A stretch of DNA of 63,644 nucleotides, filler included, from Reticulomyxa filosa (lineage: Eukaryota; Protista; Foraminifera), in the NCBI GenBank assembly GCA_000512085.1. It is 19 parts of 19 records of this genome, joined end to end, with 100 filler letters (N's around TTAATTAATTAA, not from the genome) between each part and the next. Parts side by side here need not be neighbours in the genome. Positions count along the whole stretch, not along the records: positions 40,199 to 49,317 come from ASPP01013495.1; 18 more parts are not named here. The stretch is one strand, 5' to 3'. Numbering within the stretch: the stretch's first letter is position 1; the number at the start of each line of letters is the position of its first letter. Positions 39,201 through 49,905 of this stretch are shown one piece after another. A program made the translations under genes and the position numbers. The notes beneath the pieces were generated by a model. The model made no database searches. It was not told the DNA's origin and saw nothing but the letters and a program-made list of their open reading frames with translations.

Positions 39201-40792
39201 AAAGACAAGTGATGAAAATTGTATGATCATACATATTCCATTATATGTTGCGCGTATCATTGTGGTAGTTGTATTCCTACGTACTATGACAATTTGGCTA
39301 TAATTTACTAATAAAAGAGGATGCGATTGTGAGTAAAGGTCTCAGCGATGGCGCATGCAATTGAGACTTCCATTATAAACTACTTGAAGACTAAATAAAG
39401 ATTAATTTCTGTGCACTACAATACAATTCCATAATATGTCATCTTTTTGCAAAGAGATCAAACTGATCGTCCATAATCCGTCAATGTATCTCATTGGCAT
39501 TTGGGCAATGTCAACGCACAATATCACTCGTGTGCGTGACAAACGATTTCGGCACTCCTTCCTCACGTGAGACCTTTTTTACAGCTTAACAAGTGCGCAC
39601 TTTGCATCATGACAATATTAGTGAGTATCTGCATTCAAAATGATTCTTCGATTAAGTGGTTGTCTTCTTTGCACCTGGTGTCGATTTTCATAATATCGAG
39701 ACTCCACTGTATTGTACGACAGATCACTCGTGTTATTTCCTCAATGGAGACACAAAGTTTCTTCCGGATATGCATCGACTGGACAATACACTAAACACAC
39801 TTACTTTGGCTCCAATTATGTATCTCAAACAAATTTATTTTGATAACGACCTTTTGTTTTGTTTTATTTTTTTAAGTTTCTTTGAATTAAAATGAAATGT
39901 AAAGCCATGTAATCAATACTTGTTGCTCGGGGACAGCTATAATATTTACTCCACAAATACCCATTGACGACAATCTTTTCTTGTACTGCATCGATCTTCT
40001 TCTTTTTATTTTTTCAGATGCACGACCACGTACTTTCATTTTTCATTGCCACCTATAATTAAAAAAACAACTCATTTTAGTGTTGCAAAAAAAAAAAANN
40101 NNNNNNNNNNNNNNNNNNNNNNNNNNNNNNNNNNNNNNNNNNTTAATTAATTAANNNNNNNNNNNNNNNNNNNNNNNNNNNNNNNNNNNNNNNNNNNNAA
40201 TGTGATCTTGGTGTTTTCATTTTTGTTTTTTTTTCCAACCACTTCATTCTCCTTTGCTCGGCAATTGTCCTCTTCTCGGAAATTGCTGGTAGAGGGAAAA
40301 AATAGAAGAGGGTCAGACAAGACACCAGTTTTTTCTGTTATAAATTTTCGATGGTTTCAACCACAATTTAAAAAATAATCCTTTTTAAAGAATTGCTGCT
40401 TTTCACCAGAGAAAACTCATAGCCAAAAAATAATGTTTGATAATTCTTTTTCACAAAATAAAAAATTAAAGAGGAGAGTTAGTAATATTGTGAACAGAAA
40501 ATATTCAATAAAGTTCACACAGAGAAAACTAATAAGATATTTCTTTGCAATCAATGTAGAAATGCGATCCAAAATCAAGAACAAGAATAATGGAGAAAAA
40601 TGCTCCAAGCAATGAAGGAGATGAAGACGAAAATTTCAAAAAAGTTGTTCATAATAGAAATACAATTATAAATATTCAGGATTTTTTGATTGCTTTTTTA
40701 CACGCACGAAAATGCCTTTAGCTCAAGAACAATTCAATACAACTTTATAATGAGAATACAATGGATTTTTTCCATAAACAAATAGCCTGTCT

Positions 40793-43700
40793 TTAATTGG
40801 AAACTGCATTGAAGCGCTTTTTTTCTTGTTTTATTATTATCTACCCATAAGCATCTTCATCACTACTTACTTCAACTGCTTTTAGGATGGATACTTTTGA
40901 GCCAAAATTTATTAATGGGAATTGAAATCTTTGTCTTCTTTCTTCGAAAGTGGAGCCAAGATCACGAATTTTCTCCTCCATTTTTGCTCGAAATTCAGTA
41001 TCCTGTAAAAAGTAGCACATGCTAGTGAGGTGATACACATACTTTTTCTTTTTTTTTTTTTTTAAAGACAAAACAAAACTGTCATGCGGCCGTCATCCGG
41101 AAACTTTTCCTCTGGCTCGTCATTGCTTAGCCTATCAATATCGGAGTCACTCCAAACAAGAGGTCCTTGAGGAGGGTCATCTTCAGGTAGTCCCATTGTA
41201 CCATAGGGTGCCTCATAGGTAATTCTACCAGAACTTCTGGATTGTGTTGTTTTGGTAGGAGTGAAGTTTCTACTACTACTACTACTACTACTTCTATTGA
41301 TACTTCTATTGATACTATTATTGATACTTCTATTGATACTGCTATTGATACTGCTGCTTTTATTGATAGTGCTACTGCTGCTTCTATTGATAGTACTACC
41401 ACTATTGATGGTGCTACTGATACTACTGGAATAACTCCTTCCGGTATCACCATGGTCTAAATAAGAGATGTTCGAATGTAATCGTGCCCGAGGACGCGGC
41501 TCGAATAGTCCGGGGAAATTAAGGTGGGAAGTGGAGTCACGACTGTAATCAGTTTGGTTGACGTTAAGATTTTGGTTGGCAAGAGGAGGATGAGAAGGGT
41601 GAGGAGAAGGAGCATCGGTAAGGCTGTATGCATCCCCATAGGAATAGGCGAAAGGAGATATACGTGAAGGATCATTTGCAAAAGAAGACGATGACACAAT
41701 CGGCATGGGATCTTCATAGCTCGAGCGCATGTGATTTCTTGGAAAGGCATTGGAAAAGGGGAGATACGTTGTATAGTCGATATTCGTAAAATGTTGCGTC
41801 GCTGGCGTTATGTGTGTCATTGCAGGTTTTGTGTCCACAACACGATGCACATCACGTTCCCCACCAGCCCAAGATATCTGTTTGCTGGTGGCAAAATTGA
41901 CTGTGTAAGGCATGTCATCATTTTCACGGCGCTTGAACGAATACTGTTCCTCTCCTCTCAAATACGCCGCTTCCATTCCACTGCTTATCAACTGGGAGTA
42001 ATCTTGCCATCCACTGTCTCCCTTGAACTGCCATTTATAATGTTTGTCGTCCATCTTTTCTTCATCCACGCCCTCGCCGTTCTTATTTATCCTGCTATTT
42101 TCATTGTCGTCATTCGCATTCTCGCCATTGCTCGCATTCGCACTATTTATATTGGCGTCGCTTGCATTTTGAGGCATTCCTTCGGATGACATTTCCACTA
42201 TCTCGCTAAGCGTTGTCGGTGTTGTGCTTGCTTTTTCAGTTGGTGCACTTTTTGATTGCACTTTTTTTATTTTTTATTTTGTTTTGTTTTGTTTTAAATT
42301 GCTCATTGCTGTTAACCTTTTTTTTTTTTTTTGAAGTTACTATTAACGTAGCGTTTCTTTGGAGCTTTTTTTTTTGGTCTTCTTTTCATTTGTGGAAAAA
42401 TCCTCGCCATAAGCCAAATCTTTTTTTGAAAGGATGTTCAATCGTGCTGGAGTGGATTTTTTCCTTTCGAGTATGATCTTGCTTGATTTGCCTTCTTTGT
42501 CTTCTTTATTCTCTGTACATTCTTTATCTTCTTTGCTTTCTTTACCTTCTTTACCTTCTTTGCTTTCCTTGACGGACTTACTGCTTGGCTTCTTTTTGAA
42601 TATTTTCTTTTTCTCACTTTCTTTTCTCTTTTTCTTTTTTTGTGTCGGTAATTCAATCTTTTTTTTTTTTTTTTTTTTTTGTCAGATGTGTACATCATGA
42701 GTTGGAAGGGTAAAAGGAAGAAGGGAAAAAAAAAAAAAAAAAAGAATAACGGGCTGTAAGGGGTTGTCCAAAGGTTCAGCCAAGTGACCATTTTGATGAT
42801 TATTTTTAACGTCAGTGCTGGCACTAACATTGATAGTGCCATTGTTGCTGACATTTGCGTTGATATTTGTGTCGACTTGGGTACCCTTGGCATTAGCATC
42901 AGCATTGACATTGGCATTGGCATTGGCATTGATATTGACATTGATATTAATGTCGGTGTTGGAACTCTCACTTTGATCATTACTTGGGCCCTTTTCTTTT
43001 TTTTTTTTTTTTTGAGGGTTTACGTACAAACTTTCAATTCTCTAAAAAAACTTGCACTCCAAATTTTGGGAGGAAAAAAAAAAAAAACAAGCCTTGAGCA
43101 AGAGCAAGCTGAGTCTGGGAAAAGATCATTGCAATGGTATCATGAACATTTTGAGTCAACAGAGCTTTGGTGGCTTCGCAGCGCCTTGCGAGTTCACTCC
43201 AGCTGGAGGTAGATTCTTGGACGTGTCCTGCGTAACATAGTCATATGCGATGCGTGCAGGATAGAAAAAAAAAAAGGTCTCCAAAGATTGTTTAGAGAAT
43301 TTGAACACACGAAATTTAAAACAAACAAACAAACAAATAAATAAATAAATAAACTTAAGACAATGTTGTCAATGAAAAGAACCAAGGGCCTGTGAGAGAT
43401 GGACGTGACGTGCTGCTGAATAGCTTGAAATGAAAAAGACAAATGATCATAACGACGACAGGGCCATGAAATGGCCACGACAGCACGCGAGCGTTGTTGG
43501 CGCTGAGAGATCCACGAGATCAAGTCAAAGGTCGCGAAGAGAATGCTGGCGACAGAGACGGGAGTGAACGACGACGACGACGAGAAAGGATCTTGCTGCT
43601 GTTTGGACAGCTCAAAGTGCACGTACACACATAACAGTTCCCACAGATAGTCATTGGAGAAAAAGGGAGAAAAAGAGGCAGTCGGTGTCGAGGAGAGTAG

Positions 43701-43908
43701 TGCTCGTTTCATTTCAAATGCTTGCCACGCTTTGAAAAACAATATCGCCGCTTGCACGTTGGCATTATGTTCGATTTCTTGTCGCAAATAATACGATCGA
43801 AGCAAAGTGAACGACCACGTCATATTGTCTACTAAAAATCGATGAGGCGATATCGTCGTCGTCGTCATCGTCGTTGTTGTTGTTGATGATTGTTGTTGTT
43901 GTTGTTGT

Positions 43909-43951
<43 letters not shown>

Positions 43952-44651
43952 TTGAAAAGAAAAAAACAGTGTCTCGTCTATGACAAGGTGTGACATCTTG
44001 GATATCCGAAATGGCACTGTCCAATTCCTCTGGGGACATACGATAGACATGAATCCCTGATTGCTTGTAGTGGAACAGACAATATTGTATCTTGTTGTAT
44101 GTGAATACCACTTCAATTGTAAACAACACATTAGGTTGTATTTGTACTTGCACTTTGTGTAATGGCACACTACTTTGTCGACATTCATTCAGACTCTGCT
44201 TTTCTTTATCTCTGTCTTTTTCTTTGTTATTCTTTTTCTTTTCTTTCTCTTTGCATTGCTCTTCAATCCATTTCTTGATTTGTCTTTGCTTCTCCATTAT
44301 CACTTCCAATTCCTCCGCTTTTATTCCGTTCCTTTTATGACGCAACCCGATTTCAAATAAAAATATCAACTCTCCTTCTACTCTTTGCTCCAACACTCGT
44401 TCGAATGATTGAATGTTGCCCCCCATCAACACTCCATACACGTGCTGGAATGCGCAACGCTGCTTCTTGCTTTCTTTCAACAATTCACTGATAAATTCAT
44501 TCGCCCACGTCCAATATTCCTTCTCGTCACTTTTGTGCAGTTCGTCCATCCTTGTCTTTATTTCCTCATCTATTACTTGTGATGACTCGTTTATTGTTGT
44601 CGTCACCACAGGGCTTATCAATCCTTTGTCGTCTTCTTTTTCGTGCGACAT
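40793..44651 (-). CDS. 2'-5'-oligoadenylate-synthetase-like nucleotidyltransferase, low-complexity linker, WWE domain
   Basis: NTase-like VLMGGN...VEGELIFLF...FTIEVVF. OAS1_C-like SFTLLRSYYLRQ, AILFFKAW, DYLWELLCVY, VAISW, RPLVL and, after intron 43228-43354, WSELARRCE. WWE KWQFKGDSGWQDYS...MEAAY...YTVNF...RDVHR. Intervening exons can be spliced in frame. Confidence 0.7.
41270..41430 (-). repeat. Low-complexity coding repeat (SINR/SSS)
   Basis: (TAC)n and 12-bp ATTGATACTNCT-like units on the plus strand. Confidence 0.8.
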
Positions 44652-45024
44652 TTGATCGCTAACCTTCGACACTTGAGTCTTTTATTGCCACTACTTAATT
44701 TTCTGCTTTATTTTTTTCTCCACTATTCCAGTTCACACGCAAATCCTTACTATATATTTTTCCAGCCACGAAAAAGAGAAATAGTTTTTTTATTTGTTTT
44801 TCCAAAAAAAACAAGACAAAAAACGACTTGCGTTCTAGTTTTGTGCATTCACAGTTTTAAAAGACCTTTGCACATGGAATATACTTTTTGTTACATAAAT
44901 CAAGTACACATTTGAGAAATCTTGTCACCTTACATGCAGAAAGATTGTAGCTTGTTACTGTCCAGTGTTTTTTCTTCACATATGCATACACCAGCTGGAT
45001 AGAACAGCATTAGCCTTTTTTTTA

Positions 45025-45230
45025 TAGCAAAATAAAAAAGAAAGTTACTCATAAAATGCAACTATTCTTTACAATTTTTTTTTAGATTAATTACTTTGTA
45101 TTATTTTTCTTGCTGAAATTTTGCATTTTTATTAAAATGTGAAAATAAATTTATTGTTTTGTGAAACAACTGATGTTGAAACTGTGATAAATAGCTGTAA
45201 TCGTCATAAAGTTGCAAAAAAATATATTGA
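45025..45230 (+). mobile_element. Degenerate left end of the Tc1-like element
   Basis: TA followed by TAGCAAAATAAAAAAGAAAGTTACTCATAAAATGC resembles the TIR at 19216. The downstream extent is uncertain. Confidence 0.5.
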
Positions 45231-45918
45231 AGTAATTAGTACATTCAAAAATAGTATTAAAAGAAATGCCCATAAAGATAACTCTAAGATTAAGTCCGTA
45301 TTGATGTTATCTGGGAAATGTTTTAGTGACGGAACTGATAATTTTAGTGTACTTTTAGTTTTTAATGCGACTTATGACTTTCTAAGTGTAATGTTTTTAA
45401 ATTGGTTTTTCTATACAGTTTATTGATCTTTGTTTGTTTCCACTAAAAAAACTCTGGTAAACCCGTAGTGCGTGGAAAACAGAAAAACAGTAAAATGACA
45501 TAATTATAACCTTTACATTGATTATTACAAAAATTATTGCTTTATTACAATCGACAACATTTCAAAATGAAACCAACTATGCGTCTCAAATCAGAACTTA
45601 TAAAAAATACAAGTGATTCCCCCCAAAAAACAGTAGCAGTGTTCAAAAAAAAGATGACCAAATGTTGTTCAGAGAGGAAATCAATCATTTCATAAATGGC
45701 GCAATAGGTTTTCTCATTCTTATAAAACAACTGACTTTTTACTTTGCACTTTGTGCTCAAAGTACGAAAACGGGACAAATGTTGAAATATCTGGCAAAAA
45801 AAGAGGTATGGGTTAAATTTTTTTGGCTGTTTTGTGTTAACAGTAGCAGAAGAAAAGGTGTTTTAGAAAAAACCTAGCTAAAATTAAAACTAGCTCTAGA
45901 AAAGTTCATTTACTTATA

Positions 45919-46836
45919 ATGGCAGGAGAAGAGATAGACTGGGATGCGTTGGTGGAATCTCAAAGCCGACTGAGATCAAGACGTGATGTGTTGATAAGTG
46001 ATGCATCAAGCCTTGACCCTCCTGTGGCTGCCAGCCCAAAGCCGGTGTCAACAGATGAAGTAAAGAAAGTAACACAAGAAGAAGAAGAAGAAGAAGAAGA
46101 GGTAAAGATAAAAGAAAAGAAAAGTAGTGGACGTCAAGTAATGTCATTAGAAGAATCATCAAATATATCATTAAAAGCATATGAATTAACAACATTAATA
46201 GAATCAAAACAAATAAATGAAGGAATAAGTGCATTATGTGTAACAATTCAAAAACAAAGTAATAAAATAAAAGTATTAATATATGTAGCAACAAAAGGAG
46301 ATAAAATATTAGTATTTGAACAAAGTGAATCAATACGTGGAAAAGGAGGAATAGAAATAAAATTAACAAAAAGTGAAGATTTTAAAAAAGCAAAAAAATT
46401 TAAACAAATGGTAATATGTAGTGATTTAAATTTATTAATAGCAATATTATCAGATGGACATTATATAGCATTACATAGTAAAGCATTAACAATAGCAGCA
46501 GAACATATATTACCAATAAAAACAAAAACAGCACAATATGTAATTACAGAATTTGAGAAACCAAATTATCGTTTTGGTATTTGTAGTAAAAGAAATATTT
46601 ATTTATTTGAATGGGATATAAATGATAAAAAATATAATTTAATACGTGATATTAATATTAATGAACCTTTTTATACAATAATATTTTTAAAAGAAAATTG
46701 GTTATGTTATTCTATAAAAAAAAGAGGTTATATTTTAAAAAATGTACAAACAAATGAAGAAAAGAATATAGCATTACCAATTGATGATAATGTATCACCA
46801 ATGATAACAAAAGTAAAATATCAAGATAATAATGAA

Positions 46837-46877
<41 letters not shown>

Positions 46878-47637
46878 TTTTGAAGGATATTTATTATTAC
46901 AAGCATCATCTAATATTAGTGTATTTGTAGATTTTCGTGGTAATCCTGCACCTCGAAGTCCTATTAGTTGGAGTGCTATGCCATTATTTATTGAAGAATG
47001 TGATACATATTTAGTTGGTTATTTAATTAATTCTACTATTGAAATTATGTCTTTAGTTGATCAAAAATTAGTTCAAACTCTTGCTATTAAAACTATACGT
47101 AAAAATACTTCTAAATTTATTTCTATGTCTATGTCTGTTTCTGTAAAATTACCACGTGGTATTAGTGTTGCTAATACTATTGAAAGTCAACAAAATCAAT
47201 CACAATCTTTAATACAAAATCAAAATTCTCAAAATCAAATTTTAAATTTAGATGAAAATATTGATAATTTAATTGCATTACGAGATACTCAATCTTTATT
47301 AGGTATGTTTCAAACACCATATCATGGAATTTTATTATTTTATGATGAAGCAGAAGTACAAGGATTAATGCCTACTCCTATAGAACGACAAATTACAGAA
47401 TGTATTGAATTTTTAAGAATTGAAAAAGGATTACAATTATTAATGAAAACAAATCCAAATATTGAAGAAAAACGTTTATTTCATTGTAAAGCTGGTTTTG
47501 CATTATTTTTTAATATGTATTTTAAGCAAGCAATGGAACATTTTTCAATTAGTGATATTGATCCAAGAGAAATTATTTATTTATATTCTGATATTAAACC
47601 AAATAAAATATCATATATTATTCAATATCAACAACAA

Positions 47638-47668
<31 letters not shown>

Positions 47669-49266
47669 CATTATTAGAAAATGTAAATCAAATTATTCAT
47701 TTTGTTCAAAAATGGAGAAGAAGACATCATCCAAGTACTGATAGAAGTCGTGGTTTTCATAATAATGAATTAGAAGCTACAGCACAATATTTAAGAGCAA
47801 TTCATTATTTAGGAGAATTTTTATGGAATCGTCGATTAAATTATCAACAACAACAACAACAACAACAACAATTAATAATAGATAATGAAATACGAATTAC
47901 AATAGATACAGCATTATTAAAAATATATTGTGAAACATATCGTCATGGATCAAAATTAAAACAAGTAACTCAAACTGAAGAACATTCATTAATTGAATCT
48001 TCTATGTTACAATCACCATTTCCTTTAGAACAATTATTAAATATATCACAACCTAATTATTGTATTTTAGAAGAATGTGAAAAAATGCTTTTACGAAATA
48101 ATTTATATTATGCTTTAGCATTATTATATTATAGTCGAAGTCAAGATAATCAAAATGATACTTTAGCTGCTTCTCATTTAAGAAGAGCATTAACTATATT
48201 ATTAGATTTAGGTACTGGAAAATGGACTGATTCTGCTAATCCTAATTTTAATGGAATTCCATTAGCTGTTTCTATATTACGACAAATGGAATCTTGTCCT
48301 GATTTATGGTCTTATGCACAACCTTTATTACTTCGTTCTCCATCTGAGGCTATTTCTATTTTTACAATGCCTTTAAGAAATAAACGTATTCCTGAAAGTG
48401 AAATTGTGGAATTTTTAAGAGATTTACAATCACAATTTGATCAATCATCATTATCATCATCATCATCACAAACAACAGAAACACAAACTACTCCAGCCTT
48501 AATGGTAAGACAAAAATCAAGAGCTAGAGCTGCACTCAGCTATGAAGATCAATCATTAACTACAACATTATTATCAAATCCTCAACTCCTTTTATTATGG
48601 GAACAAGTAACACGATTTGATTATGAACAAATCTATTTAGAACATATTGTAATGGGAGAACATATTACAGTTGGAAGTTATCATGATGATTTAGCTCTTA
48701 TTTATATGTCAAAAATTTATAAACTTATTCAAATTATTCAAATTAAAAATAATGATATATCAAATATTAATTCAAAACCAATTCAATTATTAAATGAAAT
48801 TCGTTCAAAATTATTATCATTACTTGATTGGAGTGAATGGTATGCAGCTGAAAAATTATTACAAAAAGCAAAACAATATAATTTAAATGAAGAAATGATG
48901 CAATTAAATAAAAAATTAGGAAGACATGATGAAGCATTAAGATTATTATTAATTGAAATGAAATGCTTTGATCGTGCTATAGAATATTGTTTATTGGCTT
49001 TACCACGATCCAAAGATAGAAGTGATAGATTTTTACAATTTATTCAAATCTTTTTACAACAATCTCCTTCATCTCTTCAACCTATTGTACAATTATTACA
49101 AAAATATCCTCATGATATTAATCCTACTCTACTTTTAAAAATACTTCCTTCTAATATACCTATTCATGTTTTTCAAAATTGGTTTAATTTAATTCTTCCT
49201 GCTAATATTCGTCGACAAAGACAAATACAAGCTCAAAAGCATTTTTTTCAAAACAAGCTTTTGCAA
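45919..49266 (+). CDS. VPS39: Vps39/Vam6/TGFBRAP1-family protein (CNH plus alpha-solenoid), 3'-partial
   Basis: CNH-like FVDFRGNP..RSPISWS..P; IDPREIIYLY, IDTALLKIY, ALALLYYS, YLEHIV...YHDDLALIY, KLGRHDEAL...AIEYC and LLKILP. CAA|GTTTAT donor before the contig end. Confidence 0.88.
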
Positions 49267-49905
49267 GTTTATATACATATATATGTATATATTGTATATA
49301 TGTATATATGTATATATNNNNNNNNNNNNNNNNNNNNNNNNNNNNNNNNNNNNNNNNNNNNTTAATTAATTAANNNNNNNNNNNNNNNNNNNNNNNNNNN
49401 NNNNNNNNNNNNNNNNNACTATTATTTTTTAACAAATTATTCATTTATTTATATAATCGTCAAAAAAAAAAAAAAAATTAGACAATATTCACATTTCACA
49501 AAGAAATCTTTATATTCCACACTTTATCTTATTCAATAATTCAACATTAACTTTGCACAGTTGAAAAAATTCTTCATCTTCTAACACGAACGAAAGAAAG
49601 AATAAAAATTTTTTTCATTTACAATATTTTCTCACAAAATGAAACAAAAGTCAGTCCAACAAGGAAAACTCTTCATAAACAATCAATGTTTGTTATCGTG
49701 ATGTAATTACATCTACACCTAATGTTCTAATTTTTTGTTTCAGTTTGAAAAACTGTAAACCATAATAATCATCAGATCACAAACATTGTAGATTTTTTTT
49801 GTGAACATTTTCAAAAGAGAGAAAAGGGCTAGTATTGTGGTTGAGAAAAAAACCCAAAAATAAACTCACTTTAGTCAGTTGTCAAGGAGTTGCTCATGTT
49901 TTTTT

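Follow-up and report, generated by a model that had tools for sequence, protein, structure and literature searches.

OAS-type CD-NTases probably go back to the first eukaryotes or soon after, and to our knowledge almost nothing is known about their function outside animals. Here we analysed a gene that almost certainly belongs to an OAS-like family in the foraminiferan Reticulomyxa filosa (assembly GCA_000512085.1). It is carried by a stretch of 63,644 nucleotides, filler included, joined from 19 parts of that genome (the window), within the part that spans positions 40199-49317 (ASPP01013495.1); there, an open frame at 43194-44672 on the minus strand holds nucleotidyltransferase motifs. The encoded protein, hereafter the query, has a predicted OAS-like fold and would be a paralogue that has probably lost catalysis, comparable to human OASL.

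The closest described sequences come from Culbertson and Levin (2023; PMC10732462), whose supplementary trees and alignments include five from R. filosa. EP00480_P025644 is the protein that we number P0005 among the relatives of the query (RFI_14454; ETO22742.1), and EP00480_P024262 is our P0007 (RFI_15844; ETO21360.1). In the published main tree, the counterparts of these two proteins form a clade among dinoflagellate, green-algal, diatom and animal sequences beside bacterial clade C, and the eukaryotic clade in that position was named the OAS superfamily and is present in 8 of 12 eukaryotic supergroups (PMC10732462). Since RFI_14454 and RFI_15844 are already in the published OAS superfamily, OAS-like genes in Rhizaria are not new, and a preliminary description of the window, made from its sequence, had overrated the novelty of the locus. 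The text of the published study does not discuss Reticulomyxa (PMC10732462), and no paper in the library that we searched joins Reticulomyxa with oligoadenylate. Neither the extent of the expansion nor the degeneracy of most of its active sites seems to have been described so far.

Searches and folding used exon 1 or exon 2 of the gene separately. The query protein alone gave no Pfam match, whole or in pieces, and its phmmer matches in the PDB were almost only polyQ or low-complexity artefacts, none of them related. A word-indexed protein homology search found nothing, PADLOC models gave no match to the query, and the products of the open reading frames were absent from a collection of 15 billion proteins when looked up exactly. 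Relatives were recovered by scanning 1.84 billion cluster representatives exhaustively with phmmer, which returned 18 matches, 16 of them true (E 5e-18 to 2e-5) and two polyQ artefacts (P0017 and P0018). A profile search added six further relatives, and two metagenome scans yielded no more. The family comprises at least 21 R. filosa 'hypothetical proteins' and one metagenome fragment; every named relative is a 'hypothetical protein RFI_...' of R. filosa (ASPP01006525 is one of the contigs), and no member exceeds 40% identity to the query. Within the piece, a family hidden Markov model (HMM) built without the query matched the exon-1 frame alone (208 bits, E 5.8e-64). The best match, P0001, is a 149-residue fragment from a 921-bp JGI metagenome contig (L002; 3300030740), and in a tree of the family only it forms a clade with the query (support 100/98) apart from three R. 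filosa clades.

We then compared the family, as a 23-sequence profile, with all PDB sequences at E up to 10. This search matched OAS2 (E 2e-10, in four stretches and both OAS units) and three OAS1 sequences (E ~0.015), and gave no poly(A) polymerase (PAP), TUTase, cGAS, DZF, Nrap or other related match; a profile of the N-terminal lobe again found OAS2 (E 8.7e-4). Significant sequence similarity to OAS holds at the level of the family profile, not for the query alone. Standard domain searches miss most of the family, as no member gives a Pfam match: the HMMER check that had been proposed for the locus found neither OAS1_C (PF10421) nor NTP_transf_2 in the query or any of 22 relatives at E up to 1.

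The motifs on which the preliminary description had relied are all present on the minus strand and in the order that it gave. Numbered from the ATG at 44651, those of the N-terminal lobe are VYGVLMGGN (GGN at residues 77-79), RVEGELIFLF (EGE at 92-94) and FTIEVVF (177-183), and the same frame continues with SFTLLRSYYLRQ, ILFFKAW (K307), DYLWELLCVY (334-343), FATFDLI, VAISW (376-380) and RPLVL (421-425). The profile alignments pair the family block VYGV..GGS.QK....DGDL.FL with the GGS and D-x-D region of OAS, the start of the helical lobe with FSTCFTELQRDFL, LK.W with LVKHW, E.LC.Y with YALELLTVY and ISW with CIYW. The pairings with OAS first drawn from the sequence were thereby reproduced for GGS, D-x-D, the FTELQRDFL helix, LVKHW, YALELL and CIYW.

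The predicted structure pointed in the same direction. AlphaFold2, run on the 23-sequence alignment, produced a model with a mean pLDDT of 77.7 and a pTM of 0.77 (the single-sequence model, with pLDDT 44, was unusable), and by structure comparison this model has a Pol-beta-type nucleotidyltransferase lobe and a PAP/OAS1-type helical lobe. The top eight Foldseek matches of exon 1 were all OAS proteins (OAS1, OAS2 and OASL), with OAS3 tenth. Using VIA-align, we obtained Z 17.7 against OAS1 (283 aligned residues, rmsd 4.0) and Z 15.6 to 16.3 against OAS3, OAS2 and OASL, compared with 15.7 for PAP, 14.2 for CdnD, 14.0 for Utp22 and 13.6 for NF90. Given the modest Z margin over PAP, structure by itself would not distinguish OAS, and it is the profile result that does so. 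Taken together, profile and predicted structure bear out the assignment to the OAS fold. A shape search of the ESM Atlas returned bacterial SMODS and other nucleotidyltransferase clusters, and several paralogues gave weak matches to CBASS cyclase models in PADLOC. Protein-language-model features ranked Nrap/Nol6 clusters first (score 0.92). We rejected a Nrap/Nol6 identity, as profile and structure both favour OAS, and read the language-model signal as a reflection of the shared PAP/OAS-like fold.

Having placed the protein in the OAS-like family, we examined its active site. An active OAS requires G-[GS]-S with its Ser, Asp-x-Asp and a third Asp (FDVLPAF), and the query has none of the three. 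In place of the G-G-S nucleotide-binding motif it carries G77-G78-N79 (44415..44423, minus strand); the family-profile alignment to the GGS of OAS1/OAS2 sets N79 in the column of the OAS Ser, in agreement with the change from GS to GN already described. E92-G93-E94 (44370..44378, minus strand) stands at the D-x-D metal-binding pair, where the profile columns 'e-g-d' match D-A-D of OAS1/OAS2. Around the third position, the profile segment e-f-D-i-l-v-a-f (FDILVAF in paralogues) aligns to S-F-D-V-L-P-A-F of the active OAS2 domain II, and the corresponding row of the query reads L-F-T-I-E-V-V-F. Within T178-I179-E180 (44112..44120, minus strand), the Thr occupies the canonical third-Asp column and the Glu lies at +2, in a column where OAS proteins carry Leu. 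The earlier pairing of FTIEVVF with EFDVLP was thus off by two residues, and the striking 'all-Glu triad' derived from it rests on that misalignment: E92 and E94 do occupy the D-x-D columns, but the third column holds Thr178 and E180 falls two residues further on.

On a strand, residues i and i+2 share a face, and E180 probably points toward the active site, albeit from a displaced position. We take the +2 residue to face the active site in OAS1, since a porcine OAS1 active-site mutant, L149R, has a crystal entry. This position is also acidic in P0001 (Asp) and P0009 (Glu), and hydrophobic or otherwise occupied in the remaining paralogues. In the helical lobe (43365..43733, minus strand), K307 (LFFKAW), Y335 and E338-L-L (DYLWELL), ISW (378-380) and D428 (FIDN) are retained, as seen in the alignment to LVKHW, YALELL and CIYW of OAS1/OAS2; in our own reading, FIDN would pair with ILDP of OAS. 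The counterparts of Lys307, Tyr335 and Asp428 line the nucleotide pocket of OAS1.

The canonical active site is kept by only a handful of family copies. P0005 and P0007 carry GGS, DGD and Asp in the third column, and the fragment P0016 carries GGS and DGD, its third column not being aligned; R. filosa members with the full GGS / D-G-D / D set are, by their motifs, probably active nucleotidyltransferases. Elsewhere the states are GGS / ESD / D (P0002), GGS / ESS / D (P0010) and GGN / IGD / N (P0004), and a clade of 12 R. filosa paralogues has SGC (SGH in P0012), CGY (YGY in P0012, CGN in P0015) and His, compared with GGN / E-G-E / T178 in the query. The query and the two catalogued proteins RFI_14454 and RFI_15844 belong to the same family (HMM E 5.8e-64, 25-30% identity), share the two-lobe architecture, the conserved blocks YGV..GG, FLF, AFTY..YC.FHYK, LK.W, E.LC.Y, WP and DN..L, and an intron readable at the same place. 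They differ in that the query has GGN / E-G-E / T where the other two have GGS / D-G-D / D, lies in a separate clade and contains polyQ and K/E-rich inserts.

The closest relative of the query was also informative. The P0001 contig additionally encodes the N-terminal part of the gene (CPFQCIYGVLMGGDIQS...), with GGD at the G-G-S motif, and, after a frameshift in an A-run, the strand QGKIVFLYQ in the third frame, which places Q-G-K in the D-x-D columns. The subfamily of the query therefore does not conserve acidity at D-x-D, and this speaks against a functional site built on Glu. What was called on this contig (L002 1-921) as two neighbouring 'genes' is one OAS-like gene, with the frameshift in the A-run at ~330-365.

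The gene almost certainly belongs to a paralogue family of the OAS superfamily that is greatly expanded in Reticulomyxa. With Ser changed to Asn, Asp-x-Asp to Glu-x-Glu and Thr at the third Asp, the query would no longer synthesise nucleotides. It may instead be a non-catalytic OAS-like protein whose role is to bind some ligand or partner, in the manner of human OASL and of the inactive OAS2 and OAS3 domains. We consider this loss of catalysis fairly probable because the Ser has become Asn, the third Asp Thr and two Asp Glu, because the site of the sister sequence is not acidic, and because the triad is eroded across the paralogues. Of the two options that the preliminary description had left side by side, synthase or pseudo-enzyme, the second is favoured by Q-G-K in the closest relative and by the many paralogues, the majority, without the triad. 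Put simply, the query is an ordinary divergent member of an already catalogued protist OAS-like family, and probably non-catalytic. A defence or immune role and the sensing of RNA are what we infer only by analogy with animal OAS and bacterial CD-NTases.

Several observations weigh against a loss of catalysis. Two of the three metal-binding positions are still acidic in the query, the pocket residues of the helical lobe are kept, and no close orthologue was found with which constraint on the query could be tested. Moreover, the acidic +2 residue shared with P0001 and P0009 lies on the same strand face, which makes a shifted third carboxylate conceivable. The query could then be an active nucleotidyltransferase with an all-Glu metal site, in which E92 and E94 would replace D-x-D and E180 would reach in as the third Asp, producing an oligonucleotide or cyclic-nucleotide signal, possibly with a changed metal or nucleotide preference. 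Such an enzyme would account for E-G-E falling exactly in the D-x-D columns, for an acidic +2 residue that is confined to the query, P0001 and P0009, and for the retention of K307, Y335 and D428. It is nevertheless unlikely, as Asn replaces the phosphate-binding Ser and Thr fills the canonical third position, the sole other member of the clade carries Q-G-K instead of D-x-D, and the query alone matches no CD-NTase or OAS model; in addition, an Asp-to-Glu change at the metal site of Pol-beta-type nucleotidyltransferases usually cripples activity. More speculative still, and in our view quite improbable, is a broader version in which the clade of the query would use a shifted carboxylate-rich site (E92, E94, E180) and remain a synthase with unusual chemistry or an unusual product, while foraminifera would carry a large, fast-evolving battery of OAS-like genes (>20, mostly pseudo-enzymes), a sensor family of innate immunity separate from animal OAS/RNase L.

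The gene itself could also be decaying, and the gene model bears on this point. Starting at the ATG at 44651, the OAS-like frame has 485 codons; an upstream GTG would extend it to 492. Exon 1 (43355..44651, minus strand) consists of that ATG followed by 432 codons and one base, and covers the nucleotidyltransferase lobe together with most of the helical one. It is followed by a proposed phase-1 intron of 127 nt (43228..43354, minus strand), read from the sequence as running from GTTTAT to CGCAG, with the donor A|GTTTAT at 43355/43354, the acceptor CGCAG|GA at 43228/43227 and a split AGA (Arg) codon. With a GC content of 0.29, the intron lies below the two exons (0.42 and 0.43). The R. filosa paralogue locus L001 likewise allows an intron to be read, matching in position and phase (after ...IDNVTL / DN-x-x-L, within an Arg codon) and followed by ...MWKKWSEQAKIALDYL. 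The proposed exon 2 (HVQESTSSWSELARRCEATKALL...; 43034..43227, minus strand) is open to a TGA at 43034-43036 and contains SSWSELARRCE, which is found in a second frame downstream of the main one; the phase-matched intron postulated before this motif can thus be read directly. WSELARRCEA of exon 2 resembles WKDLACVCEA of P0002 at the equivalent place, although the pairwise BLASTP value is marginal (E 0.036), and HMMs built from the C-terminal tails of the paralogues gave no significant match to exon 2 (E 0.55 and 0.79). Because the support for exon 2 is weak, its 3' end is provisional. The predicted protein has ~495 residues.

Judging from this model, the locus is a real, apparently intact two-exon foraminiferan gene. 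A recent pseudogene, silent or decaying and functionless with its frame still open, would fit the long polyQ and K/E-rich low-complexity inserts, the degenerate catalytic motifs, the uncertain 3' end with its weakly supported exon 2, and the birth-and-death turnover that so large a paralogue family suggests. We regard it as improbable, however: the frame runs for 432 unbroken codons where random frames are short, the residues that define the fold are preserved to a degree that allows a confident model and a 208-bit family match, and the splice signals are intact at a position that is also readable in an R. filosa paralogue. Least credible of all is that the protein is no relative of OAS but a scaffold for RNA processing, outside immunity, like Nrap/Utp22 or DZF proteins (NF45/NF90), since, despite the first rank of Nrap/Nol6 clusters by language-model features and the structural matches to Utp22 and NF90 (Z 13.6 to 14), no profile match to Nrap, DZF or PAP appeared even at E 10 while OAS2 and OAS1 were found, OAS came first in both Foldseek and VIA-align, neither Nrap nor DZF gave a Pfam match, Nrap proteins have ~1100 residues in six domains, and catalytically intact paralogues of the query sit within the CD-NTase/OAS tree. 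The preliminary description had named a best match to DZF or Nrap as the result that would remove its immune interpretation; OAS ranks above both in the profile and structure comparisons.

Viewed as a non-catalytic OAS-like protein, the query can be set against the better described members of this fold. It shares its motif order with vertebrate OAS1 and the active domains of OAS2 and OAS3; OAS1 is its best structural match, and OAS2 and OAS1 are the only PDB profile matches of the family. It differs from OAS1 in an identity of ~15%, in the replaced catalytic Ser and third Asp, in Glu-x-Glu for Asp-x-Asp and in the missing Pfam OAS1_C match. We know of no RNase L-type partner in the foraminiferan lineage. 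With human OASL (Z 15.6), OAS2 domain I and OAS3 domains I and II, all catalytically dead, it has in common an OAS fold with a degenerate metal triad, and in the profile alignment OAS2 domain I has Glu in the third-Asp column. In contrast to these proteins, the loss in the query would be independent and lineage-specific, and the query has no ubiquitin-like domains. The bacterial clade C and D CD-NTases of CBASS (CdnC, CdnD) have the same fold (Z about 13 to 14), and the paralogues match PADLOC cyclase models weakly, whereas the query is a eukaryotic gene with an intron, without a CBASS effector neighbour and without a PADLOC match. Finally, the Nrap/Utp22 and DZF pseudo-nucleotidyltransferases resemble it in having the PAP/OAS-like two-lobe fold without catalytic residues, and differ in lacking a profile match, in structural scores below those of OAS, and in size and domain make-up.

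Two inserts interrupt the conserved lobes. A run of 20 Gln (residues 235-254; 43890..43949, minus strand), followed by a Ser/Thr-rich stretch, lies in the linker between the lobes, and a Lys/Glu-rich low-complexity insert (residues 134-152; 44196..44252, minus strand) in the N-terminal lobe. The Gln run was the source of the spurious matches in the PDB and among the cluster representatives (P0017 and P0018). The model has pLDDT <50 at residues 150-163, that is, at the end of the Lys/Glu insert and in the loop that follows. These inserts dominate naive database matches (Mediator, nucleoporin and huntingtin fusions), and a search without a family profile would be misled by them.

The C-terminal ends of the paralogues showed features of their own. 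At 7250-7560 of L001 (contig ASPP01006525), the conserved intron after DN-x-x-L seems to be wrongly spliced or translated through in the deposited R. filosa models, and P0004, P0010 and P0013 have a poly-Phe or Cys-rich 'peptide' at the point of this intron. Because of this apparent mis-splicing, the published family proteins would be partly wrong at the C-terminal end. Full-length R. filosa paralogues (P0002, P0003, P0004, P0010, P0019 and P0020) continue past the OAS-like fold with an extra C-terminal region of 100-250 residues. This region contains a conserved (I/V)EHCF motif and matches nothing in Pfam, and the window piece yielded no counterpart of it.

The piece at 40199-49317 is AT-rich and has three long open frames. 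Downstream of the OAS-like gene and on the same strand, a WWE-domain frame (41062-42261, minus strand) of 399 codons (WWE Pfam E 1.7e-8) has long Asn/Ser-rich low-complexity tails. In the 770 bp between this frame and the stop of the OAS-like gene, a single frame (42339-43030) contains more open stretches, rich in Asn and in Lys. The WWE gene may thus start much nearer to the OAS-like gene, and the two may even be joined. On the other side, a Vps39/Vam6-like frame (45919-49317, plus strand) is intron-less, exceeds 1133 codons and is cut by the edge of the piece; it has a CNH domain (E 1e-15), a weak Vps39_1 match, and runs of polyN and polyQ. Among named proteins, the best relative is R. filosa RFI_16594, with 67% identity over part of the length, which, together with the R. 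filosa origin of all named family members, fits the rhizarian host proposed earlier.

For the family as a whole, the pattern of few enzymes and many degenerate paralogues resembles the evolution of OAS and OASL in vertebrates. The R. filosa proteins provide a concrete set for asking whether protist OAS-like genes signal, sense or act otherwise.

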